Assembly: GCA_964187785.1 (NCBI GenBank)
Contig: CAXLNC010000137.1
Coordinates: 1 to 64,000, forward strand
Direction of reading: 5' to 3'
DNA from: Amphiscolops sp. MND2022
Lineage: Eukaryota
Length of the DNA: 64,000 nt
In this document: positions 3,717 through 40,718 of the stretch, piece after piece
How the letters are laid out: each line of letters opens with the position of its first letter
Position numbering within the stretch: the first letter of the stretch is position 1
Notes under the pieces: generated by a model
The model's input: the letters and a program-made list of their open reading frames with translations, nothing else
Database searches by the model: none
What the model was told of the DNA's origin: nothing
Translations under genes and position numbers: made by a program

Positions 3717-3964
3717 NNNNNNNNNNNNNNNNNNNNNNNNNNNNNNNNNNNNNNNNNNNNNNNNNNNNNNNNNNNNNNNNNNNNNNNNNNNNNNNNNNNN
3801 NNNNNNNNNNNNNNNNNNNNNNNNNNNNNNNNNNNNNNNNNNNNNNNNNNNNNNNNNNNNNNNNNNNNNNNNNNNNNNNNNNNNNNNNNNNNNNNNNNNN
3901 NNNNNNNNNNNNNNNNNNNNNNNNNNNNNNNNNNNNNNNNNNNNNNNNNNNNNNNNNNNNNNNN
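3717..3964. other. Assembly gap (N run)
   Basis: Run of N. Confidence 1.
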
Positions 3965-10460: not shown

Positions 10461-10479
10461 CTCTGCAGAAATGTGTCGG

Positions 10480-10596
10480 TGCTAAGCTCGAGCAAGCTTC
10501 CCTTTATCCACGAAGCTCAGAAGCTTGAGCCACATGTCAAAGCACGCAGCACAAGCTTGTCTAAGGTCAAGCTGAGGAAGAAGCTTCCTCTTAGCA
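10480..10596 (-). repeat. E1 3' LTR (117 bp)
   Basis: Direct repeat of 18112-18228 with 3 transitions; terminal inverted TGCTAAG/CTTAGCA. Confidence 0.95.
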
Positions 10597-13500
10597 CTCC
10601 CCCTTGGGGGCCCGCAGTCTTCAGCGGGGCCCCACAAGAAGGAATGCTTCTTCGCAAGGCTAAAGCTAGAGTGCGCAAGGTGGAGCTCAAGGCTCTGAAG
10701 CTCAAAAGGTGAAGGTTGTCTCGGAAGCTTCCTGTCAAAGCTCTGAGTGCTGAAGCTGTCAAAGCTGTCTGGAAAGCTCTGTCCTGAAAGCTGGCTTTCA
10801 AGCTGTCTTTCAAAGCTGCTGGGGTTGAAGCTGCTCAGGGCCAAGCTGGTTGCTGTGAAGCTGCTCTTGCCCAAGCTGCTCTGTGAAGAGCTGCTTTGTG
10901 GAGAGCTGCTCTTCAACAAGCTGTTGGTGTCCAAGCTCTTCTTGTCAAAGCCCTTGTTGTCAAAGCTCTTCCTGTCAAAGCTCTTCTTGTCCAAGCTCTT
11001 CTTGTCAAAGGTCTTCCTGGGAAAGCTCTGTGTCTCAAAGCGCTTCTCGAAGCTGCTTGTGGGAAAGCTGCTCAAGGCTAAGGTGCTTCGAGTGAAGCTG
11101 CTCTCGGCCAAGCTGCTCTCCACCAAGCTTCTTTTGTGAAAGCTGCTCCTTGCAAAGCTGCTCTGTTGGAAGCTCTGCTCTGCAAAGGTCTCTTTTGCAA
11201 GGGTCTTCTCTGCAAAGCTCTTCCTTGTAAAGCTCTTCTCTGCAAGGTTCTCTTCAAAGCTCTTGGCTGCAAAGTTCTCTTCGAAGTTCTTCTCTGCAAA
11301 GTTCGTCTCTGCAAGCTTCTTTGCAAAGCTCTGCTCTGAGCTGCTCGTTGCCAAGCTGCTCTTGCCAAAGCTGGGCTCTGCAAAGCTGCTAGCTTCAAAG
11401 CTCTTTGCTGCCAAGCTCTTGTCTGTGAAGCTGGTCTTCTCAAAAGTGTAGTTGTCAAAGCTCTGCTTTTGGAAGCTGTTGGTGGCAAAGGTGTTCTGCC
11501 TGAAGCTTCTCTCCTGCAAGTTCTTTCTGCCAAGCTGCTGTTGCTGAAGGTTTCTTCTGTCAAGCTGCTGTTTGTGAAGCTGCCTGTCTGAAGGTCCTGT
11601 TTGCCAAGCTGCTGGCTGAAGAGGTTCTGGTTTGAAGCTCTGGTCTAGCAAGCTGCTGACTGAAAAGCTGTCTGGCTGAAAGGTTGCTGTGCTGAAGCGC
11701 TGTGCTTGAAATCTGCTGGCTGAAAAGCTGTCCTGTAGGAGGGTTCTGCTGAAAAGCTGTTGTTGAAGAAGCTGTTCTTGTAGAAGTGCTTCTTTGCAAG
11801 CTGTTCCTGTCAAGCTGGGGAGGCAAAGTGCCTCTAAGCTGTTCTCTGTGAAGTTCTCTTCTTCAAGCTGGTTCTTCTGAAGCTGGCTTGTTGAAGTTCT
11901 TGTTGGCAAGCTGGTTGTTGCCAAGGTGTTCTTCTCAAGGTTCTTGTCTGCAAGCTCTTCTTCTGGAAGCTCTTTGGGAAGAAGGTCTGGTGGTGAAGCT
12001 GCTTTGGCCTCACTGCTCTGAACCAAGCTGGTGCTGAAAGGCTGCTGGTTCAAGCTGGCTGCTGGAAAGCCAGTTGTGAGAAGCTGTTCTTTGCAAGCTT
12101 CTTCTGTGTGAGTGAAGTTGTCCTCTGCAAGCTGCTTCTTGTAAAGGTTGTTTTCTGAAGGCTGCTTCTTGGAAAGGTTGTTCTCTGCAAGCTGCTTCTT
12201 GTCAAGGTTGTTCTCGCCAAGCTGTTCTGAAGCTACCTGCTGCAAAGCCAAGGTTTCAAAGAAGAAATGCTGAAAGACAAGGTTGTCTATCAAGCTGTTC
12301 TTGGCAAAGGTTGCTGCAAGCTCCTTGTGCAAGATCGTCTCTCTGAAGCTGGGGTGTTCCAAGCTGAGCTGCTGACAGGTGTTCTTCTGAAGCTGTTTGT
12401 TCTGAAGCTGCCTCTGATCTGTGGAAAGATTGTTCGGAAGATGTTGGTCTGAAAGCTGTTTGCCAAAGTTCTCTGGAAAGAACTTTTCCAAGCTGATGTT
12501 GGAAAGATCCCGTTCTGCAAGCTTCTGCTTTGAGAAGCTGGGTTTGTCTGACTGAACTGCTGCTGGCCAAGCTGCTGTTCTAAGACCTGAAGCTGACAAA
12601 GGTTCCTCTGGAAGCTGTCTGCTGATTGCTGATTCTGGATCTTGTTGGCAAAGCTGTGAAAGATAAAGCTGGAAAAGTTTGCTGTCTGGAACTGTTGCTG
12701 AAAGCTGGTTTTGCTGCTGCTGATTGTTCTGCTGTAAGCTGAGTTCCTGAAGCTGAATTTGCCAAAGATTTTGTTCAAGATGATCATAAGGACCAAGCGA
12801 ACAAGTTTTATTGGCAAGCACCTTCTCAAGCTCCTGTTCCAGAAAGTTTTGTGAAAGCTCATCCTTCTTCTCAATCTTCTTGTTGCTAAAGCTGTCATGC
12901 TGAAGCTGAATTTTGCAAGGTTGTTCTTGTCCAAGGCTGTCCTGAAGATAACCAAGCTGACAAGTTGCCAAGTTCTTGGTGAAAGAGAAGTTGTGAACCA
13001 AGAAGCTGAAACAAGACAAGGTTGTACGAAAGCTTCTTGTTGTTCTCAAAGAGGTTGTTGTCAAAGCTGATGTTGAAGCTACTCTGCTGAAAGATGTTGT
13101 TTGCAAAGTTGTCATGGAAGCTGATCTGTGGGAAGATGATGTTGACAAAGATGTTGTGAACAAGCTCTTTCTCAAAGCTCTATCTCTCCAAGCTGTGTTG
13201 CATGGAGGTTTGAGCCAAGCAGTGAATGCTAAGCTCAAGCTGTGCAAGGTCGAAGCTGACAAGGTTCTTCTGCTCAAAGCTCTCAAGGTCAAAGCTGGAA
13301 GCTGGTTTTGGGAAGTTGTTTGCTGAACTCCCCCTGAAGGTAAAGCATTGCTAAGCTGAAACCCTGTAAGCTGAAAACTCTGCTGATCTGAAAACTGAAG
13401 GCTCCGAAGCTGTCTGTTCCTGATCCTGATTGTCTGAAGCAAAGCTGCACAGATAGAAGCTCTAAGCTCAAAGCTGATCGTGTGAAAGCTATCTGCCTGA

Positions 13501-15272
13501 AGCTGGTAGCTGACACTGATTGAGCCATACTGAAAGCTCAAGCTCTGTACTGGGTCAAGCTGGTTGAAGCTCTCTAAGCTGCCTCTGCTACCCCTGAAGA
13601 AGCTAAAGCAATTGAAGCTCAAGCTGGTATCTTGGTCAAGCTGGTGCAGATAAGATGACTGAAGCTCATCTTGTTGCATGCTTGCTTGTTGAAAGCTCTT
13701 GTTGCAGTAAGCTGCTGCAAGCTCTTCTTGCTGTAAGCTGATTTTGAAAGAACAAGTTGTAAGATACAAAGCTGCACCTGCAAGATAAAAGCTCCCAAAT
13801 AGAAAGATCAACAAGCACATCTGCAAGCTCAAGATCCTCTTTGAAAAGCTGTGAGTGGAGAAGCTATTCGTCTTAGCTCTCTTGTCCTCAAGCTGATCCT
13901 TTCGAAAGCTATCTGCAGAGAAGCTGCTCGTCTCAGCTCTCTGTTTCTTATTTTGGTGCGCAATGTGGTCGACAAGCTCTTCCAAGCTCCTATCTTGTAA
14001 GCTAACTTGTTTGAAGCTCATTCTCTGAAAGCCATTTTTGTTATTCAAGCTCAAGCTCTGTAAGGTCAAGCTTTGTAAGCGATCCTCTTTGTGACTCAAG
14101 TTATCCAAGGTCAAGCTGCCAGTTGGAAAGCTCCAATTGGCGAAGATCAAGCTTTGTAAGTTGGCCTCTGTCAAGCTCAAGCTCTTCTCTGTCAAGCTGC
14201 TAAAGCGATCCCCTTTGCTCAGTGGCAAGCTCAAGCTGCATAAGGTCAAGCTCTCTGAGTCTATCTTCTCTAAGCTCAAGCTCGGTAAGGTCAAGCTGGC
14301 TAAGCTTTTGTCTGCCAAGTTCTTTGACAAGCTCTCGAAGCAAGATTCAGACAAGGCAAGCTGGCGAAGCTGAGGCTTTTCCATGGGAGGCTCTAAGGTT
14401 ACCATCCCTATAACCAAGCTAGAGCTAGGAACAAAGGAAGCAAAGCAAAGCTCAGTAGGCAAAGCTAAGGTTTCTGCAGCTCCCATGTTTATCCTAAGCT
14501 TAGCAAGCACCTGTTCTCCAGAAGCATTGTGGATCAAGCTTTCTGCAAGATTCTTGTCTGGATGAACCCTGCTAGCCTGAAGCTGATCCCTAAGTTGTTT
14601 GTGCTTGTTTCTTCTGGAGAGCCCAAGCTGCATAGCTATGGGCCTCCCATCTACAAGCTCATCTTTGAAGCTACTGATTTTCACTCCTATCTGCACATCT
14701 TTTTCAAGCTGATCCATGTCAAGTTGTTGCAGAAGCTTTCTTGAGTGAACAGCTATTGCTAGAGCTAAGTTCACTGCTTGAAGCTCTGCTTCATCTTGAT
14801 TTTGTGCACAAGCTGTTTTGCAGGAAGTTATCAAAGGAACATCCCACAATAACAAAGCTGTGCTCAGACAAGCTCTTGTCCAAGATGAGGCTGAGAAAGC
14901 TAGAAGCTCAAGGTTCTTCGCTTTCCCTCTTGCTATCTGGGTTTTTGTGTGCAAGCTTAGGTTGTAGTGCAACGTTCCAGCAAGATAACGAAGCACTTTG
15001 TGAAGCTGCTTTTCCACTTTTGTTGTTGGATTGTTCAAGCTTTGGGTGAGCACAAGCACCTCAAAGCACAGGTCTGGGCGACAAGCGGTTGTTGCCCAAG
15101 CCAATTCTCCAACAATATGTTTGTAAAGCTCCTGCCTACAAGCATCTAGAGCAAGGTTTTGCTCTAGTGCATCTTGGGAGGGCTCTTCTTCATCTAAGCT
15201 TCCTAAGGGCTCCTCTTGTTCAAGCTCATGCCGGCACAAAAGATCATGAACAAAGCAAGGTTCCAAAGACAA
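10482..15272 (-). CDS. E1 3' ORF (1596 aa): C-terminal pseudo-RT and pseudo-RNase H fused to LxSLTL repeats, a hydrophobic helix and 5-residue QL/SF repeats
   Basis: LYKHIVGELAWATTACRPDLCFEV...LHKVLRYLAGT matches the copia RT thumb (YRSLVGSLxY...RPDIxFAV...KRILRYLKGT); EAELQA, RRNKH and NLAESL match copia RNase H; the frame is open to a TAG at the end of the LTR. Confidence 0.75.
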   Translation of the reverse strand: MSLEPCFVHDLLCRHELEQEEPLGSLDEEEPSQDALEQNLALDACRQELYKHIVGELAWATTACRPDLCFEVLVLTQSLNNPTTKVEKQLHKVLRYLAGTLHYNLSLHTKTQIARGKAKNLELLAFSASSWTRACLSTALLLWDVPLITSCKTACAQNQDEAELQAVNLALAIAVHSRKLLQQLDMDQLEKDVQIGVKISSFKDELVDGRPIAMQLGLSRRNKHKQLRDQLQASRVHPDKNLAESLIHNASGEQVLAKLRINMGAAETLALPTELCFASFVPSSSLVIGMVTLEPPMEKPQLRQLALSESCFESLSKNLADKSLASLTLPSLSLEKIDSESLTLCSLSLPLSKGDRFSSLTEKSLSLTEANLQSLIFANWSFPTGSLTLDNLSHKEDRLQSLTLQSLSLNNKNGFQRMSFKQVSLQDRSLEELVDHIAHQNKKQRAETSSFSADSFRKDQLEDKRAKTNSFSTHSFSKRILSLQMCLLIFLFGSFYLAGAALYLTTCSFKISLQQEELAAAYCNKSFQQASMQQDELQSSYLHQLDQDTSLSFNCFSFFRGSRGSLESFNQLDPVQSLSFQYGSISVSYQLQADSFHTISFELRASICAALLQTIRIRNRQLRSLQFSDQQSFQLTGFQLSNALPSGGVQQTTSQNQLPALTLRALSRRTLSASTLHSLSLAFTAWLKPPCNTAWRDRALRKSLFTTSLSTSSSHRSASMTTLQTTSFSRVASTSALTTTSLRTTRSFRTTLSCFSFLVHNFSFTKNLATCQLGYLQDSLGQEQPCKIQLQHDSFSNKKIEKKDELSQNFLEQELEKVLANKTCSLGPYDHLEQNLWQIQLQELSLQQNNQQQQNQLSATVPDSKLFQLYLSQLCQQDPESAISRQLPEEPLSASGLRTAAWPAAVQSDKPSFSKQKLAERDLSNISLEKFFPENFGKQLSDQHLPNNLSTDQRQLQNKQLQKNTCQQLSLEHPSFRETILHKELAATFAKNSLIDNLVFQHFFFETLALQQVASEQLGENNLDKKQLAENNLSKKQPSENNLYKKQLAEDNFTHTEEACKEQLLTTGFPAASLNQQPFSTSLVQSSEAKAASPPDLLPKELPEEELADKNLEKNTLATTSLPTRTSTSQLQKNQLEEENFTENSLEALCLPSLTGTACKEALLQEQLLQQQLFSRTLLQDSFSASRFQAQRFSTATFQPDSFSVSSLLDQSFKPEPLQPAAWQTGPSDRQLHKQQLDRRNLQQQQLGRKNLQERSFRQNTFATNSFQKQSFDNYTFEKTSFTDKSLAAKSFEASSFAEPSFGKSSLATSSSEQSFAKKLAETNFAEKNFEENFAAKSFEENLAEKSFTRKSFAEKTLAKETFAEQSFQQSSFARSSFHKRSLVESSLAESSFTRSTLALSSFPTSSFEKRFETQSFPRKTFDKKSLDKKSFDRKSFDNKGFDKKSLDTNSLLKSSSPQSSSSQSSLGKSSFTATSLALSSFNPSSFERQLESQLSGQSFPDSFDSFSTQSFDRKLPRQPSPFELQSLELHLAHSSFSLAKKHSFLWGPAEDCGPPRGSAKRKLLPQLDLRQACAACFDMWLKLLSFVDKGKLARA
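10597..10605 (-). promoter_or_regulatory. E1 polypurine tract (AAGGGGGAG)
   Basis: Purine run directly 5' of the 3' LTR; the same AGGGGGAG core occurs in E2. Confidence 0.85.
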
Positions 15273-15335
15273 GCTGATGGTGTTGCTTGATGCTTTGTAC
15301 TCTAAGGTCCTATTGCAGAAGGTTAGGAACTTTCA

Positions 15336-15789
15336 GGATCGCGCAGAGGGTCCCAACAACGAGTGGCGGTCACTCTGCAGTGCTGCAACAAAGAGAAGGC
15401 AAACCAAAAACCTTAAATGCCGTTGTCGCAGCCCACCAAGCAGGAATGAATGTTGAATTGCTTAGCGCTGACTCCCAACGTGTGATCGTGAGGGTCAGAA
15501 AGTTGGTTGTGTACTTAAGCTCCAGCCAGGCCACCCCCAAAACAGCAAAACTCCCAAAAGCGCAGAGGGTACCACCTCACGAAGAAAATTTACCAACAGG
15601 GGTGCTGCTGGCAGATTTTTTTTTATTTTGGGGGTGCGCGTGACCATTTTTGAAAAAAAATTGCCAACAGGGGTGCTGCTGGCAGATTTTTTTTTTGTTT
15701 CGGGGGTGCGCATGACCATTTTTGTTGTGCCGGAATCGGGCGGGATCGGGCGGAATCGGGCGGGATCGGGCGGGATCGGGCGGGATCGC
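15336..15789. mobile_element. Composite insertion of about 450 bp interrupting the E1 pseudo-RT
   Basis: Absent from E2 at the homologous site; bounded by GGATCGC at 15336-15342 and 15783-15789; contains a roughly 72-bp tandem duplication and (ATCGGGCGGG)n. Confidence 0.8.
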
Positions 15790-16933
15790 TTTTGGATTGG
15801 ATCTAGGGAGACTAAAGCAGAAAGCTCACAAAAGAGATCTTCCTGCTGAAGTTCGCTCCCTCCTATCAAGATGTCTCTCTTGTGAATCAAGATCACAAGC
15901 TCATCTCCAGAGAAAAGATTCTGATCCATCTTGTTTTGATCTAACCCTAAGCTCCTAAGGTGTTTTCCTAAAGCATCCTCTGAGCAAGCTGTCGTTGCTC
16001 TTGTCATTGTAAGCTGCCATTTTTGTCTCAAGCTTAAGGTCAGTAAGATCCTCAAGCTGATCTCTTGGCGCTCCTTGTTGCTTAAGCTATGTGGTTTCTC
16101 TGCAGCAAGCTCAATCTCCTTGATGAGCCTAAGCTTTTCCAAGTTCCTAAGTTGGCTTGCTGCAGGTTGCTGACCTTTCTGCTCAAAGCTCCTCTGATCG
16201 ACTGGATCTTGAGAAGCTTTTCTGGCAGAAGGTTTCTTTTTCTTCCTCCTTTTCTTTCTTTTGGCACCTTTCTCTTGGCAAGCTGTTGGTGTTCCTAAGA
16301 TTGCTGTGTTCTTAACTTGTTGTTGCCTAAGGTTCTCCAGAGAAAAGCTATGGTAACAAGCTCCCCCTGAAGATGTGCATGCTTCTTCTGGAGTTCTGCC
16401 TTTGTCATCGAGTAAGCTCTCACTATGATCTTGAAAGCTACTCCCCCTTAAGGTGCTCAAGCCAAGTTCTTGAGGACAAGCTGGCATGTAAAGCTGAAGT
16501 CCTCTTGGTTGAAGCCTGGTTTTCGCCCCTAAGCTGTTGACAAGGTAGTACTCCTCGAAGTTGGTTCGAATCAAGCTAAGTTGGTTGGCCAACAAGATGT
16601 CCATCCCAATCAAAGCTTGTTCGACATTGGCAATCACAAAGCTCACACAAAGATTCAACTGTGACCCAACAAGCTGAACAGTTCTTCTCCCAAAAGTCTC
16701 TATCAAACTGCCACTCACGCTCCTAAGTTTCAAGGTGCTCTCTACAGGACTAAGCTCAACTTGTGAAGCAAAGTCCTTTGGTGCCAAGCTGATAGCTGCA
16801 CCTGTATCTATCAAGATGCCCCAAGCTGCTGTGTTCTTAGTTCCTATTCCTAAGTTGCTGTTGTTGCTGTTGCTTGGGCATCTGCAAGCTTGCTGTATGT
16901 TCCCTAGGGTTCGTTCTTCTTTACCTAAGCTGC

Positions 16934-16994
<61 letters not shown>

Positions 16995-17357
16995 CGGCCA
17001 AAGCTCATGTTCTCCGCGCGAAGCTGTTGCAGGCTGTTGCTGCATTGCAGTCTTTTGCTGGAAGTTATTCCAGCAAGTTGTTCTTTTGCTATTTTCGTTT
17101 TGAAGCTCACAAGCTGGGTTGTAAGCTTTCCAGGTGACCGTGCCAAAGGTCACTCTTTTGCTTGGCTTCTGTTGGCCAAGTTCTGCCCTCTGTGAGTCAA
17201 AGCTGTAAGCTGTGCCCACTATTTTCCCCTCTTGGCCATCTTGGTTGTATTGGCTGAAGCTGCCTAAGCTCAGTCCAATTGTCATCATTTTGTGGCCTAA
17301 GTTTTCGAAGCTCAGGTTTGCTTCTTGGTGGTCTAAAGCCAGTTGGGCTAGACTCAC
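15790..17357 (-). pseudogene. E1 middle ORF segment: aspartic protease, basic tract and N-terminal pseudo-RT
   Basis: ILIDTGA (DTG at 16800-16808) and LIGMDIL; KRKKRRKKKKP; RILLTLSLRQKWQL and VILIHKRDILIGG (HKRD at 15873-15884, in place of copia YVDD). Cut by the insertion. Confidence 0.85.
16935..16994 (-). repeat. (AAC)20 poly-Asn tract inside E1
   Basis: TTG run on the plus strand, in frame in the E1 ORF. Confidence 0.9.
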
Positions 17358-17471
17358 CTCCCAGAGTTTGGGTGAAGCTACCTAAGTTTGCTCCATCCAG
17401 GTCTGGTTTTGACTCTGGATTGGTTTTGTCAAGGTCGAAGTTTTGCAAGCCCGACTCTCGACTGCTCTTGT

Positions 17472-17505
<34 letters not shown>

Positions 17506-18081
17506 GTCGGTATGGTTGTTGTGGGTGTAGGTGTGGTTGTTGTTGTTGTCGTCTGTTGTGTTGTTGGTGTTGTTGTTGTTGTTTTGCTTGCTGGCATCTT
17601 CTTTTGCAAGCTTTGCATCCAAGCTGTGCACGGCTTGGTGCATAGCCTCTAAGGCTTTTCTAAGCTGAACTCTGTGGTTCCAACTGTCATCCTCAAGCTC
17701 AAACTTATCCAAGTCAAGCTGGGTGGGGGGAGGGTCTTTCTTCTGAAGCTTCCCGGTTTGCTCCTCAAAGCCAAAGTGGCTAAGAGGAGTTTGCTCGGAG
17801 AAGCTCTCTCTAGGGTCTTCCTGTGTTGAAGCTGGAGGAAGCCTATAAAGAGGCAACCTCTCAGCTTGCTTCTGAGTCTTCCTAAGGAAGCTTGCCCTGT
17901 GCAAGCTTCTCTCCCATGTGGACCGTGGTTGATGCTCAGTGCTGAGAGGCATAGGGTGGACCGGGTAAAGTGATCGGTCACCCTGGGGCCTCAACACTGG
18001 CATCGGGGATGTTTCCCTACCTAAACCTAGCCTGTAGCTCCTGGTCTGACGATGCTTGCTATGCATGCAAAGAAAAAACAC
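17336..18081 (-). pseudogene. E1 5' ORF segment in the gag position (coiled-coil and Asn/Thr/His-rich, no recognisable Gag motif)
   Basis: Homologous to E2 26138-26945; separated from the middle segment by a 1-bp insertion at about 17336 (GGCTTTAGA versus E2 GGCTTAGA). Confidence 0.6.
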
Positions 18082-18099
18082 AGGAGCCGCAGAACCCTA

Positions 18100-18111
18100 G
18101 CTCTGCTACCA
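18100..18111 (-). promoter_or_regulatory. E1 primer-binding site TGGTAGCAGAGC (tRNA-iMet type)
   Basis: Directly follows the 5' LTR, begins TGG (complement of CCA) and resembles eukaryotic initiator tRNA-Met 3' ends. Confidence 0.85.
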
Positions 18112-18228
18112 TGCTAAGCTCGAGCAAACTTCCCTTTATCCACGAAGCTCAGAAGCTTGAGCCACATGTCAAAGCATGCAGCACAAGCTTGTCTAAGGTC
18201 AAGCTGAGGAAGAAGTTTCCTCTTAGCA
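18112..18228 (-). repeat. E1 5' LTR (117 bp)
   Basis: Direct repeat of 10480-10596. Confidence 0.95.
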
Positions 18229-21200
18229 GTCGGGGATTTTTGTTGTATAGATTTTGGAGGATTTTGCCGGGGATTTTCCTGGAGGATTTTTCTGGGCACC
18301 TTTTCCCACAAAAATGAGGAGGAAAAATCCGGCGACAAAATCCGCGAAAAAATCCGGCGGCCCAAAAATAAAAATCCGCGAAAAATCCGTTCTGCCAGAA
18401 TCCGACCCTAATATATGCCCCATAGCGAAATTGCAATCGCAACGATTCAAAATCAAATGCTTGAAAATGTTTTAACCACGTCCATGTCCAAAAAGGGGAT
18501 TTACTAAATGTTCGGTGTTCTCGAAACGAGCGAGTTTACTAAACCCCCGGGTTCGTACGAAATTTGTGGCTTCTCCTTTAGAAAGAGCCAGAAAAGAGCC
18601 TCGAAGTTCGGTTCGATTTTGGGCCGCGAACGGCGTTTAGTAAACAACTGTTCGGCAGCATCCGGGAGGGCACCGAATTGGACTGGACGTACTTTAAACA
18701 ATTCCTAAAATCGCACGATTTGAAATTGCGAGGGCGCAACCAGAATAGCCTAGAGAAGGAATCGTAAGCAAAACTTGCAATGTTGCGTGACCCCCTTGGT
18801 GTGCAACCAACTTTCCCCTGCCACTAACCGGTCAAAAATCATCAAAGTAAATCCCAGTGAGTCTCAGCCAGGTAAGTTGTGGTCCTGGTCTGCCCAAGTG
18901 CTGGTATGTGAACGGCAATGAATTGCCGAACTGATTCGCTTGGAGTTCATCTCGGTAATTGCCCGGCACCCAATTGCAGGAGCTAATTCTCGGGAGTAAA
19001 CAAAAGCGCCCGGGAGCGAAGGGGCCGCCAGAATTTGTCCCAGAAAGTCCCCTCCAAAAAGGGGTCTTTGGGAGTCGTATTTTTTCCAAGGAATCAGAGG
19101 AAAAACGTACACTCAAAATCTGCGAATTTTGAGGGAAGACACTCTTTGGGCCACTTGCTCGGCCGGCCCCTTTTGTCTACTTCCGAAATTCGCTGAGAGC
19201 TTTTCAGGTCGGTAATGCTTTAATACGATTTTAAGGCAAAGCTCACCTAGGCCCTCTATTAAGTGCCGGTTTTAATCTTTGTGAATTCTTTCTGGTGGGT
19301 GCCTACCGTTTGTCCGAAATCATAGCAGAAATAATTCGAAAATAATATTTTTCTGTATCTGCATCTGCTACGAAATAAAAATTATGTCCAAAACAATTTT
19401 GATCTGCTGTGCCCCCCCCTCCAGGCTGCAAAGAGCAGCTGTCTCTGTATCTGCTACCAAAAATAGATTCCAAAACATTTTCGTCTGTATCTGTATCTGC
19501 TATGAAATGCAAAATTAATTCGAAAATAATTTTTCTCTGTCTGCAATGCCATTTGGACGAACGGTAACCCCCCCTTTGCTAACCCCAGGGTAGCTGAAAA
19601 GGCCCCTTGGCGGTCTCTGCAGAGTGGTGTGGCAGGGGTCTACAGCCGATTGGCAATCCCTACAGATTCCTATCATTTCCCCTCACGCTTGACACCCTCG
19701 TCGGACCCCAATAGTCACTTTGCACGGAAGGCTCTTTCAGCTACCCCAGGGTTAGCACCAGGGGGTTTAGGCACTCGCCAGTTTTTTCTTTTGTAAGTCT
19801 TGGGTGCTTAAGTGCCGGTTTTGGGGTCTTAAGCGCAGGTTTTGGGGTCTTAAGCGCCGGGTTTTCTCGAAAATGAAGAAGAAAAAAGAACAAAAGGATC
19901 AACATTTCTAGGAAAGGTCCTCCGAGCTGTGCCTTGAACAATACTAAGTAATGCTTGTGTTGACAATGGTAACCCCCTGTCTGGGACTTAGTGTCCCAGA
20001 TGAGATTGGACCCCCCATCGCGAGATAGGTGTGGCAATGCCCCTGCCGCACTATGTTTTTCAGGGTGTCGCAAAGTAGTGGGACACTAAGGTCTGGGAAT
20101 CTTGACACCCTGCTCCGCGAAGTGCAGCACTTCCCTCATCTTCCCTAGCAAGGCCCCCCATTTCTGCTGCTCTCGTCCCTCTGCTTCCTTCGAGTAGCCC
20201 CAGGTATGGGTCTGGCCCCCCAAGCGCCGCTGGAGGGCCTCCCCCTCCAACCCCCTTCGTAGGACACCTCGCCAACGCCAGCCCAGCCGCCCCCTCCCGG
20301 AGCATCGCAAAAAGAGCCAGGAAAGGCGGGAAGAAGGAGGGGTATAGTGGGGAGGGAAGGGCTGTGGCTTGAGGTCCTCCAATTCCAAGGGGGGGGGGGA
20401 GGGGTTGACCCTCCAAAGAGCACTTTGGGCCAGATCCACATCTGGGGGCTCTCAATTGGTTGAACCTCCAACGAGCACTTGGGGCCAGACCCACATGTGG
20501 GGGCCCTCGAGTCGTCTGCCTAGGACCTAGGTGCGTAACGAGGGCAAATCGTTGGACAGCTCAGAGAAAGAACCATGACAACATGTCAACAAATGTCCTA
20601 CAAATATCGGAGAATTTGTCCCAAATCGCCCGCAAACACAACTACTCATCTCATGTTTTTTGCTATACCACAAAACGGGCATAATGAAACGGAGCGCAAC
20701 GCACAAAGCAACAGAAGTCGTCAAAGGGCAACTTTCACCACAATTGCCGGTAGGTAGTTTCGCTTCTGAAGCCACAGGAAGATCAGCACTTGCAAATGCG
20801 TCGCTGAAGTCCATTTTGTTACACCTCAATTTGCGGCTTACCGAATCTCTCAGATTTTCCAATCTTCTTGGACATTTTCGGACATCTCTTGCTTAGTCGG
20901 TTGCTGCTTTTGTTTGTGGGGGTGCCCTACAGGAGCGGAGAAGGCGTCGTGCGGAGGAGCGGTTGTCCAAAACGCGAAAATGGACAGCACGATTTGCTCA
21001 GTTAATTCTGAGATTTTCAAGTGTTTTTTAGAGCAAACCTTCAAGGGGCAGAAGAAGAAAACGGACTCTCCAAAAACACCCTTCTGGACGACCGTTTCCC
21101 CTGCACGACGCCTTCTCCGCTCCTTCGGCGCGCTCTGAGTTTGGCAACTCTGTTAGGACGAAGAAAACTGTCCCTGTCCACAGGGTGTCCTTCTGGAGGG

Positions 21201-24037: not shown

Positions 24038-24237
24038 NNNNNNNNNNNNNNNNNNNNNNNNNNNNNNNNNNNNNNNNNNNNNNNNNNNNNNNNNNNNNNN
24101 NNNNNNNNNNNNNNNNNNNNNNNNNNNNNNNNNNNNNNNNNNNNNNNNNNNNNNNNNNNNNNNNNNNNNNNNNNNNNNNNNNNNNNNNNNNNNNNNNNNN
24201 NNNNNNNNNNNNNNNNNNNNNNNNNNNNNNNNNNNNN
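24038..24237. other. Assembly gap (N run)
   Basis: Run of N. Confidence 1.
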
Positions 24238-26010: not shown

Positions 26011-26095
26011 TGCTAAGATGACTCTGACCATGGCTTGGGCTTTGGCTCAAGCTTCTGAGCTTGGTACAAAAGGGGAAGCTTGCCAGAGCTTAGCA
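26011..26095 (+). repeat. E2 5' LTR (85 bp)
   Basis: Identical to 33372-33456; TGCTAAG...CTTAGCA. Confidence 0.95.
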
Positions 26096-26107
26096 TGGTA
26101 GCAGAGC
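26096..26107 (+). promoter_or_regulatory. E2 primer-binding site TGGTAGCAGAGC (tRNA-iMet type)
   Basis: Directly after the 5' LTR; identical to the E1 PBS. Confidence 0.85.
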
Positions 26108-26137
26108 TTTGGTTTTTGCTCCTTCTGTGTCCTTTCT

Positions 26138-26945
26138 TTGCTTAGCATGCATAGCAAGCATCTTAAGACCAGAAGCGACAGGCTAGGCGTAAGACTTAGG
26201 GAAACTTCCCCGATGCCACTTTGGAGGCCCCCACCTTGCCGACAACCTTACCCGGCAAAGGTGAAGCCTCTCCAAAGTGAGCATCAACCACGGACCACTT
26301 GGGAGAGAAGCTTGTACAGGGCAAGCTTCCTCAGGCAGGCTCAGGAGCAAGCTGAGAGGTTGCCTCTTCATAGGCTTCCTCCAGCTTCAACCCAGGAAGA
26401 CAGCTTCACCGAGCAAACTCCTCTTGGCCACTTTGGCCTTGAGGAGCAAACCGGGAAGCTTCAGAACAATGCCCCCCCCCCCAACCCAGCTTGAACTTGA
26501 TAAGCTTGAGCTTGAGAATGACAGCTGCAACCAAAGAGTTCAGCTTAGAGAAGCCCTAGAGGCAATGCAGCAAGCAGTGCACAGCTTAGCTGCAAAGCTT
26601 GCAAAAGCAAAAGCTAGCAAGCAAGACGACAACAACAACAACAATGCCGAGACACCAACCAACAACACCAACAACAACCAGCACAACAACCATACCAACA
26701 AAGATAACAACAACAACGACAACAACAACAAGAGCAGTCGAGAGTCGGGCTTGCAAAGCTTCGACCTTGACAAACCCAATCCAGAGTCAAAACCAGACCT
26801 GGATGGAGAGAGCTTAGGCAGCTTCACCCAAATGATGGGAGATGAGTCTAGCCCAACAGGCTTAGACCATCAAGAAGCAAGCTTGAGCTCCAACAACTTA
26901 GGCCACAACAAAACAATGACAATTGGACTGAGCTTAGGTAGTTAG
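26138..26945 (+). pseudogene. E2 5' ORF segment in the gag position, frameshifted
   Basis: ORFs 26138-26494 and 26277-26945 together match the E1 5' ORF; frame change at the C-run near 26472-26481. Confidence 0.6.
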
Positions 26946-26985
26946 GCCACAACAAAACAATGACAATTGGACTGAGCTTAGGTAG
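26898..26985 (+). repeat. Perfect 44-bp tandem duplication inside E2
   Basis: TTAGGCCACAACAAAACAATGACAATTGGACTGAGCTTAGGTAG twice; single copy in E1. Confidence 0.9.
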
Positions 26986-27196
26986 CTTCAGCCAAAACCA
27001 AGATGGCCAAAAGGGGCACAAAGTGAGCTCAGCATACAGCTTTGACTCACAGAGGGCAAAGCTTGGCCAACAGAAGCCAGGCAAAAGAGTGACCTTTGGG
27101 ACGGTCACCTTGAAAGCTTACAACCCAGTGTGAGAGCTTCAAAACGAAAATAACAAAAGAACAACTTGCTGGGATAGCTTCCAGCAAGAGAATGCA

Positions 27197-30100
27197 ATGC
27201 AGCAACAGACTGCAACAGCTTCCGGGAAGGAGCTTCAGAAGGCATGCCAGCAACAACAACAACAAAACAACAGCTTAGGTAGAGAAGAGCAAACCCTAGG
27301 GAACATACAGCAAGCTTGCAGATGCCCAAGCGACATGAACAACAGCAACTTAGGAACAACAACTAAGAACACAGCAGCTTGGGGCATCTTAGTTGACACA
27401 GGTGCAGCCATCAGCTTGGCACCTCTGACCTTTGCTCCAGAAAGTGAGCTTAGGCCAGTCGAAGGCACCTTACAACTTAGGAGTGCAAACGGCAGCTTGA
27501 TAGAAACTTATGGCAGAAGAAGTGTGCAGCTTGTAGGTTCAGAGCTTGGATTGCATGTGAGCTTTGTGATTGCCAATGTGAGTCAAGCTTTGCTGGGGAT
27601 GGACATCTTACTAGCAAACCAGCTTAGCTTGATTCGAACTAGCTTAGGAGAATACTACCTTGTCAACAACTTAGGGGCGAAAACCAAGCTTCAACCAAGA
27701 GGCCTTCAGCTTTACATGCCAGCTTGGCCTTTAGAACTTGGTTTGAGCACCTTAAGGGGGAGTAGCTTTCAGGATCATAGTGAGAGCTTACTCGATGACA
27801 AGGTCAGAACTCAAGATAGAGCTTTGGCAACTTCAGGGGGAGCTTGCTATGATAGCTTGCCTCTGGAAAACCTTAGGGAACAACAAGCTAAGAACACAGC
27901 AACCTTAGGAACAACAACAGCTTGCCAAGAAGAAGGTGCCAAAAGAAAAAGGAAGAAGAAGAAGAAGAAGAAACCTTCTGCCAAGATAGCTTCTCAAGAT
28001 CTAAGCGATCAGAGGAGCTTTGAGCAGAAAGGTCAGCAACCTGCAGCAAGTTCACTTAGGAATTCGCAAAAGCTTAGGATCATGAAGGAGATTGAGCTTG
28101 CTGCAGAAAACCCAAACAGCTTAAGCAACAAAGAGCTGCAAGAAATTAGCTTGAGGATCCTTCTGTCCTTAAGCTTGAGACAAGGATGGCAGCTTACAAT
28201 GACAAGAGCAACGACAGCTTGCTCAGAGGATGCTTTGCAAAACCACCTTAGGAGCTTAGGGTTAGGTCAAAACAAGATGGATCAGAATCTGTTCTCTGGA
28301 GATGAGCTTGTCATCTTGCAGCATAAGAGAGACATCTTGATTGCAGGGAGCGAACTTCAGCAGGAAGATCTCTTTTGTGAGCTTTCTGCTTTAGTCTCCC
28401 TAGAACATACCCAAAAGCTTGGTGAAGATGCTCAGGTCAGCTTTTGCAACAGGACCTTAGAGCACAAAGCATCAAGCAACACTATCATCATAGCTTTGGA
28501 ACCTTGCTTTGTTCATGATCTCTTGTGCCGGCATGAGCTTGAACATCAGGAACCCTTAGGAAGCTTAGATGAAGAAGAGCCCTGCAAAGATGCATCAGAG
28601 CAAACCTTTGCTTTGGATGCTTGTAGGCAGGAGCTTTACAAACACAGTGTTGGAGAATTGGCTTGGGCAACAACAACTTGTCGCCCAGACCTTTGCTTTG
28701 AGGTGATGCAGCTTACCCAAAGCATAGCCAATCCAACAACAAAAGATGAAGAGCAGCTTCTGAGAGTGCTTCGTTATCTTGCTGGAACGTTGCACTACAA
28801 CCTAAGCTTGCACACAAAAATCCAGATAGCAAAGAAGGAAGCTGAGAACCTTGAGCTTCTAGCTTTCTCAGCCACATCTGGTACAAGAGCTTGTCACAGC
28901 ACAGCTTTGTTCTTGTGGGATGTTCCTTTGATAACTTCCTGCAAAGAAGCTTGTGCACAAAATCAAGATGAAGCAGAGCTTCAGGCAGTGAACTTGTCTC
29001 TTGCAATGGCAGTTCACTCAAGAAAGCTTCTGCAACAACTTGACATGGATCAGCTTGGCCAAGATGTGAAGATAGGACTCAAAACCAGTAGCTTTCAGGA
29101 GGAGCTTGTAGATAGGAAACCCATAGCCATGCAGCTTGGGCTTTCCAGAAGAAACAAGCACCAACAACTTAGAGATCAGCTTCAGATAAGCAGGGTTCAT
29201 CCATACAAGAATCTTGCTGAGAGCTTGATCTACAATGCTTCTGGAGAAGAGGTGCTTGCTAAGCTTAGGATTGACACAGGAGCTGCAGAAACCTTAGCTT
29301 TGCCTACTGAGCTTTGCTTTGTTTCCCTTTTTTCTAGCTCTAGCTTGGTTGGGATGGTTTCCTTAGAGCCTCCCATGGAAAAGCCTCAGCTTCGCCAGCT
29401 TGCCTTGTCTGAATCTTGCTTCGAGAGCTTGTCAAAGAACTTGGCAGAGAGAAGCTTAACCAGCTTGACTGTACCGAGCTTGAGCTTAGAGGAGATAGAC
29501 TCAGAGAGCTTGACCTTATGCAGCTTGAGCTTGCCACTGAGCAAAGGGAATCGTTTTAGCAGCTTGACAGAGAAGAGCTTGAGCTTGCCAGAGGCCAACT
29601 TAGCTAGCTTGATCTTCTCCAATTGGAGCTTTCCAACTGGCAGCTTGACCTTGGATAACTTGAGTCGCAAAGAGGATCGCTTACAGAGCTTGACCTTGCA
29701 GAGCTTGAGCTTGAATCATAAAAAGGGCTTACCCAGAATGAGCTTCGAACAAGTGAGCTTACAAGATGGGAGCTTGAAAGAGCTTGAAGAGCACTTAGCC
29801 GACCAAAATGCCAACAAGAGAGCTGAGACGAACAGCTTCTCTGAAGAAAGCTTTCGAAAGGATCAGCTTGAGCAAAAGAGAGCCAAGACGAATGGCTTCT
29901 CTAAGCAGAGCCTTTCACAGAGGATCTCGAGCTTGAAGATGTGCTTGTTGATCTTTCTACTTTGGAGCTTTTATATGGCAGGTTCAGCTTTGTATCTTAC
30001 AACTTGCTCTTTCAAAATCAGCTTCCAGAAAGAGAGCTTACAGTCAGAACAGCTTGTGGCAGCTTACAGAAGCATCAGAAGCACAAGTAGCTTACAGCAA

Positions 30101-30202
30101 GAAGAGCTTGCAGCAGCTTACTGCAAGAAGAGCTTTGCACAGCAAAGCCACCAAAAGGAAGAGCTTTGGAAAGCTTCTTCCAGAGAGCCAGAAGCAAGAT
30201 GA
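27197..30202 (+). CDS. E2 ORF (1001 aa): aspartic protease, pseudo-RT, pseudo-RNase H, LxSLTL repeats and hydrophobic helix
   Basis: LVDTGA (DTG at 27395-27403), LLGMDIL, LQHKRDILIAG (HKRD at 28322-28333), RPDLCFEV, LRVLRYLAGT, EAELQA, NLAESL. Confidence 0.8.
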   Translation: MQQQTATASGKELQKACQQQQQQNNSLGREEQTLGNIQQACRCPSDMNNSNLGTTTKNTAAWGILVDTGAAISLAPLTFAPESELRPVEGTLQLRSANGSLIETYGRRSVQLVGSELGLHVSFVIANVSQALLGMDILLANQLSLIRTSLGEYYLVNNLGAKTKLQPRGLQLYMPAWPLELGLSTLRGSSFQDHSESLLDDKVRTQDRALATSGGACYDSLPLENLREQQAKNTATLGTTTACQEEGAKRKRKKKKKKKPSAKIASQDLSDQRSFEQKGQQPAASSLRNSQKLRIMKEIELAAENPNSLSNKELQEISLRILLSLSLRQGWQLTMTRATTACSEDALQNHLRSLGLGQNKMDQNLFSGDELVILQHKRDILIAGSELQQEDLFCELSALVSLEHTQKLGEDAQVSFCNRTLEHKASSNTIIIALEPCFVHDLLCRHELEHQEPLGSLDEEEPCKDASEQTFALDACRQELYKHSVGELAWATTTCRPDLCFEVMQLTQSIANPTTKDEEQLLRVLRYLAGTLHYNLSLHTKIQIAKKEAENLELLAFSATSGTRACHSTALFLWDVPLITSCKEACAQNQDEAELQAVNLSLAMAVHSRKLLQQLDMDQLGQDVKIGLKTSSFQEELVDRKPIAMQLGLSRRNKHQQLRDQLQISRVHPYKNLAESLIYNASGEEVLAKLRIDTGAAETLALPTELCFVSLFSSSSLVGMVSLEPPMEKPQLRQLALSESCFESLSKNLAERSLTSLTVPSLSLEEIDSESLTLCSLSLPLSKGNRFSSLTEKSLSLPEANLASLIFSNWSFPTGSLTLDNLSRKEDRLQSLTLQSLSLNHKKGLPRMSFEQVSLQDGSLKELEEHLADQNANKRAETNSFSEESFRKDQLEQKRAKTNGFSKQSLSQRISSLKMCLLIFLLWSFYMAGSALYLTTCSFKISFQKESLQSEQLVAAYRSIRSTSSLQQEELAAAYCKKSFAQQSHQKEELWKASSREPEAR

Positions 30203-31985
30203 GCTTCAAGATGAGCCTCAGATAGCTTATCAGCAACAGCTTGACAGAGATACCAGCTTGAGCTTGCAATGCTTTAGCTTACCCAAATGCAGCAAGAACA
30301 ACTTAGAGAGCTTCAACCAGCTTGACCGAGTACAAAGCTTGAGCTTCCAGATGCTTGGCTCAATCAGTTTCAGCTACCAGCTTCAGGCAGATAGCTTTAA
30401 CAGAACCAGCTTTGAGCTTAGAGCCTCTATCTGTGCAGCTTTGCTTCAGACAACCAGGATCAGGAACAGTCAGCTTTACAGCTTTCAGGTTTCAGATCCG
30501 AACAGCTTTCAGCTTACAGGGTTCCAACTTAGCAATGCTTTAGCTTCAGGGGGAGTTAGGCAGACAACTTCCCAAAACCAGCTTGCAGCTTTGACCTTGA
30601 TAGCTTTGAGCACAAGAATGTCAGCTTGGATCTTGCACAGCTTGAGCTTAGCACTTGGTGCTTTCAAAGCCTCTTCAAGCAAGATAGCTTGGAGCAACTT
30701 AGCTTTCAACAAGAGCTTGCTTACAACATCTTTGTCAACAACAGCTTCACAAAGAACATCTTCAATGGGAGCTTTGCAAACAATAAGATCTTTGCAAACA
30801 ACATCTTTCCACAGATCAGCCTTCAGGATAGCTTTTGCAACAACATCTTCCAGAAGAGTAGCTTCAACATCAGCTTTGACAAGAAGACCTTTGAGCACAA
30901 CAAGTAGCTTGAGAACAACTTTGTCTTGTTTCAGCTTCTTGATTCACAACTTCTCATTCAACAAGAGCTTGGAAACTTGTCAGCTTGGTTATCTTCAAGA
31001 CAGCCTTGGACAAGAACCACCTTGCAACAATCAGCTTCAGCATGACAGCTTTAGCAACAAGAAGATTGAGAAGAAGGATGAGCTTCAGCAAAACCTTTGG
31101 GAACAGGAGCTTGAGAAAGTGCTTGCCAATAAAACTTGTTCGCTTGATCTTTCAGATGATCATCTTGAACAAAAGCTTTGGCAAATTCAGCTTCAGGAAC
31201 TCAGCTTCCAGCAGAACAATCAGAAGCAGGAACAGCAGCTTTCAGCAACAGTTCCAGACATGAAACTTTTGCAGCTTCATCTTTCCCAGCTTTGCCAACA
31301 AGATATAGCATCAGCATTCAGCAACCAGCTTCCAGAGGAACCTTGGTTAGCTTCAGGGCTTAGAACAGCAGCTTGGCCAGCAGCAGTTCAATCAGAGCAG
31401 CCCAGCTTCTCAAAGAAGGAGCTTGCAGAACAGGATCTTTCCAACATCAGCTTGGAAGAGTTCTTCCCAAAGAACTTTGGCAAACAGCTTTCAGACAAAC
31501 AGCTTTCAGCACAGCAGCTTCAGAACAAACAGCTTCAGAAGAACACCTTTCAGCAGCTCAGCTTGGAACACCCCAGCTTCACAGAGACGACCTTGCACAA
31601 AGAGCTTGCCACAACCTTTGCCAAGAACAGCTTGTTAGACAACCTTGTCTTTCAGAACTTCTTCTTTTCAACCTTGGCTTTCCAGAAGGTAGCTTCAGAA
31701 CAGCTTTCCGACAACAACCTTGACAAGAAGCAGCTTGCAGAAAACAACCTTGACAAGCAGCAGCTTTCAGAGAACACCCTCTACAAGAAGCAGCTTGACA
31801 AGAACAACTTCACCCAGACAGAAGAAGCTTGCAAAGAACAGCTTCTCACAACAGGCTTTCCAGCAGCCAGCTTGAACCAGCAACCTTTCAGCAACAGCTT
31901 GGTTCAGAGAAGTGAGGCCAAAGAAGCTTCACAACCAGAACTTCCCAGAGCTTCTAGCCGACCACCTTGCAAACAAGAACCTTGA
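30054..31985 (+). pseudogene. E2 frameshifted continuation 1 of the repeat-rich ORF
   Basis: Collinear with the middle of the E1 1596-aa ORF (e.g. QDSLGQE, KIEKKDEL, LRTAAWPAAVQS). Confidence 0.6.
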
Positions 31986-33362
31986 GAAGAACAGCTTGGC
32001 AACAACCAGCTTGCCAACAAGAACTTCAAGAAGACAGCTTCAGAAGAACCAGCTTGAGGAAGAGAACTTCACAGAGAACAGCTTTAAGGCACTTTGCCTC
32101 AGCAGCTTGAAGGCACTTTGCCTTCCCAGCCTTTCAGAACGAGCTTGCAAAGAAGAACTTCTACCAGAACAGCTTCTTCAACAGCAACAGCTTTTCAGCA
32201 GAGACTTCTTACAGGACAGCTTTTCAACCACCAGCTTTCCAGAACAGAGCTTCAACCTTGAAACCTTTCAGCCAGACAGCTTTCCAGCCAGCAGCTTGCT
32301 AGACAAGAGCTTCAGACCAGGAAATTTTCAGACAGCAGCTTGGCAGACAGGACCTTCAGGCAGGCAGCTTCAGAAACAGCAGCTTGACAGAAGGAACCTT
32401 CAGACACAGCAGCTTGGCAGCAACAACTTTCAGGACAGAAGCTTTGAGCAGAACAGCTTTGAGCACAACACCTTTGAGAAGACCAGCTTCCAGAACAAGA
32501 GCTTGGCAGCAAAGAGCTTTGAGGCCAGCAGCTTTGCAGAGCCCAGCTTTAGCAAGAGCAGCTTGACAACAAGCAGCTCATGGCAGAGCTTTGCAAAGAA
32601 GCTTGCGGAGACCAACTTTGCACAGAAGAGCTTCGAAGAGAACTTTGCAGCCAAGAGCTTCCAGCAGAACCTTGCAGAGAAGAGCTTTACAAGGAACAGC
32701 TTTGCAGAGAAGAACCTTCCAAGGGAGCCCTTTGCAGAGCACAGCTTCCACCAGAGCAGCTTTGCAAGGAGCAGCTTTCACACAACAAGCTTGAGAGAGA
32801 GCTGCTTGGCAGAGAGCAGCTTCACCAGAAGCACCTCAGCTTCGAGCAGTTTTCTCCAGAAGAGCTTTGAGACGAAGAGCTTTGAGAAGAAGAGCTTTGA
32901 GAAGAAGAACTTTGCAGAGACGAACTTTGACCAGAAGAGCTTTGACAACAAGGGCTTTGAGGAGCAGAGCTTTGCTAAGCAAAGCTTTGCCAACCAGAGC
33001 TTCTACAAGAAGAGCTTCGACAAGAAGAGCTTTCACAAGAAGAGCTTCGAAGAGCCCAGCTTTGAAGAGAAGACCTTTGAAGAGAACAGCTGGGACACGA
33101 GCAGCTTCTTAGAAAGCAGCTTGGTCCTGACCAGCTTCAACTTCAGCAGCTTTACTTGGAACAGCTTTCACCAGCAGAGCTTTACAGGAAAGAGCTTGAA
33201 GAACGACAGCTTTTACAGGAAGCTTCCGAGACAGACCTTGACTTCTGAGCTTTGGAGCTTTACGAGGCAACCTTCTCCTTTTGAGCTTCAAAGCTTGGCC
33301 CTGCGCACTTGCCCTAGATCAGAGCACCCTCAGCGGAGGCAGCTTGGTGACAAGCTGTCTCC

Positions 33363-33371
33363 GAGGGGGAG
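33363..33371 (+). promoter_or_regulatory. E2 polypurine tract (GAGGGGGAG)
   Basis: Purine run directly 5' of the 3' LTR. Confidence 0.85.
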
Positions 33372-33456
33372 TGCTAAGATGACTCTGACCATGGCTTGGG
33401 CTTTGGCTCAAGCTTCTGAGCTTGGTACAAAAGGGGAAGCTTGCCAGAGCTTAGCA
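33372..33456 (+). repeat. E2 3' LTR (85 bp)
   Basis: Identical to 26011-26095. Confidence 0.95.
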
Positions 33457-40566: not shown

Positions 40567-40718
40567 CAGATCAACCACTCTTGCCGTCTTCATCTCCGCC
40601 TCAATCACAGGGCCGAAGGCTCCCCCACGCAAGGGATCACCCCAAACAACCACGGTCTTGTCCAACTTCCGCAGTGCAGCACAAGACTTCCCTGAGTCTG
40701 CCACAGCGACGACACCTC
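40567..40718 (-). CDS. RCC1-like repeat gene, exon 2 (GVVAVADSGKSCAALRKLDKTVVVWGDPLRGG...)
   Basis: AAG|G acceptor in phase 1 matches exon 1; CTG|GT donor in phase 0 matches exon 3; RCC1-like repeat. Confidence 0.8.

Follow-up and report, generated by a model that had tools for sequence, protein, structure and literature searches.

The window analysed here, a stretch of 64,000 nucleotides (positions 1 to 64,000 of contig CAXLNC010000137.1, Amphiscolops sp. MND2022, GenBank assembly GCA_964187785.1), contains two copies, E1 and E2, of a retrotransposon family whose sequence is saturated from end to end with the five-base word AGCTT. The two copies lie in inverted orientation and are 82 to 90% identical (Table 1). 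E1 has the structure of a Ty1/copia-type long terminal repeat (LTR) retrotransposon: its LTRs have the ends TGCTAAG...CTTAGCA (TG..CA), a perfect 5-bp target-site duplication, CCGAC, flanks the element at 10475-10479 and 18229-18233, and the element carries a copia-type primer-binding site, TGGTAGCAGAGC (18100-18111), and a polypurine tract, AAGGGGGAG (10597-10605). In E2, the primer-binding site starts as in E1 and the target-site duplication is not clean. For an element of 7.7 kb, LTRs of 117 nt (E1) and 85 nt (E2) are unusually short. Within each copy, the two LTRs are 97 to 99% identical, which indicates that both insertions are young and that most of the ~15% divergence between E1 and E2 consequently arose in active lineages, under the selection that acts on the family.

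The long open reading frame (ORF) opens with a gag-type aspartyl protease (PF13975, E = 1.6e-5, just under the Pfam cut-off), and we refer to the part of the frame that carries this domain as the head and to the long remainder as the tail. Neither a reverse transcriptase nor an integrase was matched by Pfam in the window or among the 120 relatives listed. At its other end, the E1 polyprotein ORF runs on through the polypurine tract and all 117 nt of the 3' LTR (10482-10605, minus strand) and stops at a TAG (10482-10484) that belongs to the terminal inverted repeat and lies five bases short of the element's end; if transcripts end within the LTR, as is usual, the E1 mRNA might carry no stop codon.

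Table 1. Positions of the two retrotransposon copies and of their parts in the window
Feature	Position	Strand	Remarks
E1, full-length copia-type LTR retrotransposon, non-autonomous	10480..18228	-	LTRs, target-site duplication, primer-binding site, polypurine tract; 247 sense AGCTT (31.9/kb)
E1 3' LTR	10480..10596	-	117 nt; the long ORF passes through
E1 5' LTR	18112..18228	-	117 nt, 97% identity to E1 3' LTR; primer-binding site TGGTAGCAGAGC next to it
E1 tail, codons 351-1596 of the 1596-codon ORF	10485..14222	-	xSFxx / xSLxx / xQLxx, AGCTT every ~15 nt
E1 array, most regular section (interval of the original prediction)	10750..12300	-	
E2, second family copy, tail split into three ORFs by frameshifts	26011..33456	+	270 sense AGCTT (36.3/kb)
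E2 5' LTR, 85 nt	26011..26095	+	four to five AGCTT and an 11-nt spliced-leader relict
E2 3' LTR	33372..33456	+	99% identity to E2 5' LTR
E2 head, gag-type aspartyl protease; AGCTT in all three codon phases	27197..29600	+	PF13975; words 1-3% diverged vs 7-13% outside
E2 tail with 15-nt word array, clearest at 31480-33200	29600..33371	+	
E2 tail ORF c, 523 aa	31912..33483	+	top Pfam Pentapeptide_4 match of the window; residues 150-460 folded with AlphaFold2

On the sense strand, AGCTT occurs 31.9 times per kb in E1 and 36.3 times per kb in E2, as compared with 1.18 times per kb and strand outside the elements, which amounts to an enrichment of 27 to 31 times; on the antisense strand of the elements its density is 4 to 6 per kb. 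The word is found element-wide, in the 5' region, the protease head, the tail and the LTRs, and it stands in every codon phase in every ORF that we examined. Sense-strand AGCTT is 6 to 7 times commoner than AAGCT and is co-oriented with the ORF in all nine of the elements compared, and the variants AGCTG, AGCTC and AGCTA are rare and unconserved. The base that precedes the word is preferably C or G, giving (C/G)AGCTT, with G at -1 in 29% of the words, and A at this position (AAGCTT) is limited to 8% in the tail. In the head, AGCTT occurs about once per 40 nt with a spacing more even than that of a random scatter (14 gaps of >100 nt vs 49 expected, and a deficit of gaps of <14 nt). In the tail, 366 of the 1,166 word intervals measure exactly 15 nt.

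Two further proposals about the word were considered and rejected. ACCTT, the commonest variant in the lattice (22 of 51 imperfect sites), was a candidate for a second allowed word, but it is 11% diverged as compared with 3.5% for AGCTT. A role of AGCTT as a splice or trans-splice acceptor (CAG/CUU) is a misfit with the words that have G at -1 and with the presence of the word in every codon phase of conserved domains.

The word is conserved in itself. The divergence between E1 and E2 is 2.6% at word sites and 17.5% outside them, the drop falling exactly at offsets 0 to 4; among the other frequent 5-mers, none is <6.9% diverged in this comparison. The same conservation was found in each pairwise comparison among E1, E2 and a third family copy that originates from another assembly (L003), and in the 5' region, the head and the tail alike (p from 1e-3 to 1e-32), word sites being 3 to 10 times less diverged than their neighbours, synonymous sites included. 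The 5' region holds a possible 222-codon ORF (26277-26945) and hence is not a strict non-coding control. Between E1 and E2, third codon positions are 3.3% diverged in words as compared with 17% outside (p = 9e-11), and 3 of 94 four-fold sites are changed in words vs 37 of 313 outside. The synonymous sites of the word are as constrained as its non-synonymous sites, an outcome that the original prediction, an earlier reading of this DNA made from its letters, had set against a protein-level origin of the repeat that it described in the tail.

Codon choice, which we analysed in seven heads and 14 tail pieces by an alignment-free test, is dictated by the word as well. Leucine is encoded by CTT in 92 to 95% of the cases when it follows NAG and by TTA or TTG in 95% of the cases when it follows AGC, its codons being mixed elsewhere; likewise, the pair S-[LF] is written AGC-TTN in 86 to 91% of the cases, as compared with 32 to 49% expected from the codon usage of the same ORFs. 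The leucine codon thus depends on the preceding codon in such a way that AGCTT is completed, which shows that the word determines the codon used for L/F. Alignment within periodic DNA could flatter the conservation of the word. However, the head, which is not repetitive, shows the effect more strongly, and codon pairs were tested without any alignment. We conclude that, from one end of the element to the other, selection acts on the nucleotides of AGCTT themselves, independently of the residues that they encode.

This property extends to the family at large. All seven relatives that were fetched, with amino acid identities of 30 to 92% in the head, show AGCTT saturation with sharp element edges, and the positions of the words are old, given that 40 to 65% of them share alignment column and phase at 37 to 52% amino acid identity, vs ~1 by chance. 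In the relatives, one frame is open for 1,480 to 2,200 codons and the other frames contain ~100 stops each. Two loci stood out among the relatives: L007 (1000-12500) carries two tandem family members and is AGCTT-rich from ~1 kb to 12.5 kb, and L004 (6001-13100), where a single frame extends over ~2,240 codons and is interrupted by just two stops, is the longest near-intact member that we saw.

The original prediction had drawn attention to a 15-bp period at 10600-12300 and in E2, and this period is real and strong. The lag-15 nucleotide autocorrelation is 0.488 at 10600-12300 and 0.515 at 31500-33200, as compared with a mean of 0.26, and a control stretch (40000-42000) has no 15-nt period by the same measure. 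Tandem Repeats Finder reported arrays of period 15 and period 30 across 10787-12228 and 31481-33091, the clearest of them at 32858-33091 (15.6 copies) and 10928-11047 (8 copies). The periodic zone proved wider than had been claimed, since it covers ~10600-14300 in E1 and ~29600-33370 in E2, that is ~3.7 kb or ~1,250 codons per copy, with a weaker period in the extension. The peptides quoted at that time, KSFEKKSFEKK...KSFDKKSFHKKSF in E2 and NNLDKKQLAENNLSKKQ in E1, are present, and the recurrence of Leu/Phe at every fifth residue is confirmed by an occurrence of L/F at lag 5 that is three times that expected by chance. We also recovered the reported shift of AGCTT between codon phases, the E1 tail having 88 words in phase 0 (SF/SL), 48 in phase 1 (QL/EL/KL) and 20 in phase 2. 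Two features go beyond these earlier observations: the word saturates the whole retrotransposon, and the repeat is kept as an open frame.

The reading frame of the tail is protected, while its residues evolve neutrally. The 1,246 codons of the E1 tail contain 0 internal stops, whereas the two remaining sense frames contain 38 and 60, and Markov simulations of order 1 to 4 never gave <15 stops. At homologous codons, a single in-frame stop was observed, near the very end, whereas 20 to 22 were expected when the substitution spectrum of the copies themselves was placed randomly on non-word positions, and 1,000 such simulations never gave <8. Furthermore, 15 of the 20 insertions or deletions between E1 and E2 are multiples of three, many of these not being multiples of 15. 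Since the frame is kept open in one phase only and nonsense changes are purged, we take the tail to be translated. As to the residues, the differences between the E1 and E2 tails are distributed 172/168/185 over the three codon positions, and word-free tail codons evolve at the rate of the synonymous sites of the head, with a dN of 0.194, a dS of 0.207 and an omega of 0.94, as compared with an omega of 0.54 in the head. The amino acids of the tail are thus without selection and its frame is protected against stops and frameshifts, and the tail may represent an unusually clean case of selection for translation itself rather than for the product.

A five-residue period with a central L/F had been read in the original prediction as that of a pentapeptide-repeat beta-solenoid and possible DNA mimic. 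Pentapeptide-repeat proteins (PF00805/PF13599; MfpA, Qnr, McbG-like proteins and the repeat region of DotG) indeed have the same period, the same L/F at the centre of the pentad and a polar residue at i-1, which here is S. Their consensus, A(D/N)LXX, places a small or hydrophobic inward residue at i-2, whereas this position is mostly charged or polar in the tails of the window, with K 22%, Q 18%, S 15%, E 10% and N 10% in E1 and K 27%, Q 15%, N 14% and S 14% in E2; in the relatives, S reaches 31 to 42%. The original prediction had already noted K/Q/E at i-2 and called the canonical fold doubtful; the position is occupied mostly by K/Q/N/E/R. The known proteins adopt a right-handed quadrilateral beta-helix, a fold that was predicted for neither of the two tails modelled, and the tail of the window copies shows no amino-acid-level selection. 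AlphaFold2, applied to two tails as had been suggested, returned low-confidence models with no strands and no beta-helix, both for E2 (residues 150-460 of ORF c; pLDDT 47.8, pTM 0.16) and for P0007, the best-scoring relative (pLDDT 46.8, pTM 0.15), and a look-up of the tail of the best-scoring relative in the ESM Atlas gave no usable match and no stored model. Against the Pfam model Pentapeptide_4 (PF13599), E2 ORF c scores 31.8 bits and E1 16.1 bits, the cut-off being 38; the window copies have no match to PF00805, and the window tail has none among solved structures at E <= 0.01.

The pentad profile can be derived from the nucleotide sequence. Translated, AGC-TTN becomes S-F or S-L and NAG-CTT becomes Q/E/K-L; a C or G at -1 makes the codon at i-2 either NNC (S/N/T/D/H) or NAG (K/Q/E), and the A-rich, T-poor spacer yields K/E/Q/N/D/A. 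The word, the base that precedes it and the composition of the spacer thus account for the observed profile, with S at i-1 and L/F at the centre, without any requirement at the level of the protein. Based on these results, we propose, with a probability that we put at roughly 0.78, that the pentapeptide-like repeat is the translation of a selected AGCTT array in a translated, otherwise unconstrained retrotransposon tail. In the head, the protein domains would limit the word to about one copy per 40 nt, while the tail would be free of this limit and its words packed at the 15-nt spacing of the unit. A DNA- or RNA-level period, which the original prediction had mentioned as its alternative, is strongly supported by the density of the word, the conservation of its sites, the synonymous sites and the choice of codons.

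Several points weigh against this proposal. The tails of relatives do pass the Pfam models, PF13599 in 9 of 10 cases (41 to 80 bits) and PF00805 in 4 of 10 (24.4 to 35.5 bits), so that the search for pentapeptide models, as proposed originally, failed for the window copies and succeeded for their relatives; judged on Pfam scores only, the family would be classed among the pentapeptide repeats. Moreover, there are weak matches between P0007 and pentapeptide proteins of solved structure (E from 5e-6 to 1.5e-3), and the fold may exist in some lineages. The alignment available to AlphaFold2 was shallow (13 rows) and repeats are hard to align, which makes the low confidence of the models moderate evidence for disorder. 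A dN/dS near 1 can also be found in functional low-complexity regions that are selected on composition only. A search for sequencing runs turned up four, from a single study, of which none is recorded as RNA; that the tail is transcribed and translated, and on which molecule AGCTT acts, are conclusions drawn from the sequence. Finally, the RNA of the element folds better than dinucleotide shuffles, with z = -6.1 in the tail (32400-33100) and z = -4.0 in the head (27400-28100).

Some of these points bear on other explanations of the tail. A true beta-solenoid that might mimic DNA in the manner of MfpA or Qnr, and in which L/F would be selected as the hydrophobic core, is suggested by the period, the central L/F, the S at i-1 and the scores of the relatives; we consider it very improbable, given that the window copies stay below the Pfam cut-off and match no solved structure, that S makes up only 14 to 15% at their i-2 position, that even the best-scoring relative is modelled without strands, that the tail has an omega near 1, that the L/F codon is chosen so as to complete AGCTT, and that the word is equally conserved in the head, where the repeats are absent. 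There is a small chance that the tail protein functions as a disordered low-complexity region, with periodic aromatic or Leu stickers and a charged spacer, in condensate or particle assembly or in passage through the nuclear pore, the frame being selected for this product besides the word. Such a function would fit the family-wide guarding of the frame against stops and frameshifts as well as the low confidence of both models, which is expected for disorder, and the tail outside words is more hydrophilic than the head, with a frequency of T at codon position 2 of 0.13 to 0.18 as compared with 0.23 to 0.27. However, the word-free codons evolve like the synonymous sites of the head, and the shortage of T extends to third codon positions and to the 5' region, so that this composition is at least partly a nucleotide-level property. 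The opposite extreme, a non-coding minisatellite in a dead element whose long ORF would be an accident of biased composition, could explain why tail changes are spread evenly over codon positions with an omega of ~1, and a T-poor tail does lower the frequency of stops. We give it practically no credence, since only one sense frame is open, to an extent that no simulation approached, since one nonsense change was seen where ~20 were expected, and since a single frame is open for 1,480 to 2,200 codons in independent relatives.

As for the level at which AGCTT acts, the asymmetric fifth base, the constant co-orientation with the ORF and the disfavouring of AAGCTT in the tail indicate that the word is most likely read on RNA, and the even coverage together with the high copy number points to a multivalent site for a putative binder that coats or marks this RNA. 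Our working hypothesis, to which we give somewhat less than even odds, is that a protein with sequence-specific binding recognizes AGCTT on the element RNA in a multivalent manner; the words might, for instance, mark the RNA so that proteins supplied in trans package or protect it. An action on double-stranded DNA, through a binding or modifying factor (dinoflagellate base modification, chromatin marking, evasion of silencing) or through an integration or recombination protein, is unlikely, though it has a real if modest chance: the AGCT core is palindromic and reads on both strands, the words reach into the LTRs, and the observed/expected ratio of CpG in the element is 0.16, but a DNA-level reader does not readily explain the asymmetry of the fifth base, the excess of AGCTT over AAGCT on the sense strand of nine co-oriented elements, the rarity and lack of conservation of AGCTG, AGCTC and AGCTA, or the disfavouring of AAGCTT in the tail. 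Slimmer still is the chance that the self-complementary AGCU cores pair within or between RNAs and bring about compaction or dimerisation with no protein reader. This would agree with the z-scores given above and with the minimum-energy structures, in which words are paired to words; yet any repeated palindrome gives such z-scores, and neither the conserved fifth T nor the C/G at -1 is necessary for AGCU:AGCU pairing.

In many eukaryotes, a long 3' untranslated region is a trigger for nonsense-mediated decay, which retroviruses escape only with the help of special elements. If AGCTT is read on RNA by a binding protein, a plausible use of the words in a non-autonomous family would be the capture of proteins supplied in trans, and the open frame would keep the 3.7-kb signal array from becoming a long 3' untranslated region that exposes the RNA to nonsense-mediated decay. 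Taken to its full extent, the hypothesis would have AGCUU as a family-private RNA label for recognition, coating and packaging by trans proteins, the tail of >1,200 codons as a translated reservoir of this label that is open only for escape from decay, and the label as an edge in the competition for the machinery of a helper. We regard this complete scenario as possible but doubtful.

Selected, strand-specific oligonucleotide words are known from bacterial genomes, where they include the uptake sequences USS/DUS, Chi and KOPS. Like AGCTT, these words are short, oriented and over-represented, are kept inside coding sequence and bend codon and peptide usage. They are nevertheless genome-wide, whereas AGCTT is limited to one eukaryotic retrotransposon family and is far denser (one word per 15 to 40 nt), and its co-orientation with the transcript of the element points to RNA, unlike the uptake and repair words of bacteria. 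RNA viruses and retroviruses have dispersed, multi-site packaging signals, with many short motifs along the genome that bind capsid or nucleocapsid proteins. These offer the closest parallel to the mechanism that we judge most likely here, many copies of a short motif along a genomic RNA letting a protein select or coat it. AGCTT differs from them in that it is a plain 5- to 6-mer, with no required stem-loop and with a fixed 15-nt spacing within a translated tail. Immunoglobulin switch regions consist of AGCT-rich, tandem short units as well, but these are non-coding, vertebrate and a DNA-level target of AID; they share only the density of AGCT with our elements, and we see no reason to assume a common mechanism.

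Our search of the literature found no description of a word-built retrotransposon family or of a pentapeptide-like tail on a retroelement; the pentapeptide-repeat proteins of haptophyte giant viruses, which came up as a match in this search, are unrelated. What our analysis adds is, on the one hand, a nucleotide-level selection shown by synonymous sites, context-dependent codons and deep positional conservation and, on the other hand, a protein repeat produced by the translation of a word array, in a tail whose frame is protected while its residues evolve neutrally. We want to emphasize that, if our proposal is correct, selection acting on nothing more than a nucleic-acid word of five bases can give rise to a protein repeat that passes a curated Pfam model. 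Counts of pentapeptide-repeat domains in the gene sets of dinoflagellates and of holobionts may therefore need care, and should AGCUU be an RNA label, a share of the pentapeptide-repeat calls in the protein sets of dinoflagellates and coral holobionts would correspond to translated arrays. The family also provides a case, among the mobile elements of eukaryotes, of a sequence shaped throughout by a single short oriented word, down to the codon choice of an enzyme domain. If the word is an RNA address, it could provide a handle on the way in which non-autonomous retroelements are recognized in huge, repeat-rich and poorly understood genomes.

The LTRs contain traces of a spliced leader. The sequence TTTGGCTCAAG, which corresponds to the final 11 bases of the spliced leader of dinoflagellates (a sequence confirmed in the literature; PMC5585692, PMC6616646), has three exact matches in the window, at 26041-26051 (+), 33402-33412 (+) and 59144-59154 (-), as compared with 0.12 expected. 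The first two matches are located within the LTRs of E2, where CTT directly follows TTTGGCTCAAG so that the junction reads AGCTT, and the LTRs of E1 carry the shorter TGGCTCAAG. These relics suggest that a trans-spliced RNA of the element was once copied back into the LTR, and the genome that carries the elements is of the dinoflagellate type.

Other observations concern the assembly and the less regular parts of the two copies. Runs of N, either assembly gaps or masked sequence, are present at 3717-3964, 24038-24237 and 46041-46240. The plus strand has runs of (TGT)n/(TTG)n at 16934-16994 and 17468-17583 in E1 and at 26629-26731 in E2, with (ACA)n/(CAA)n as the sense sequence; these runs sit in the 5' region and, in the gag-like 222-codon ORF, encode an N/T-rich stretch. 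The similarity between E1 and E2 is interrupted at 15321-15788 by a block private to E1, which at 15581-15788 consists of a 72-nt unit present twice and then of CGGGATCGGG repeated ~6 times, and which represents either an insertion or a tandem repeat.

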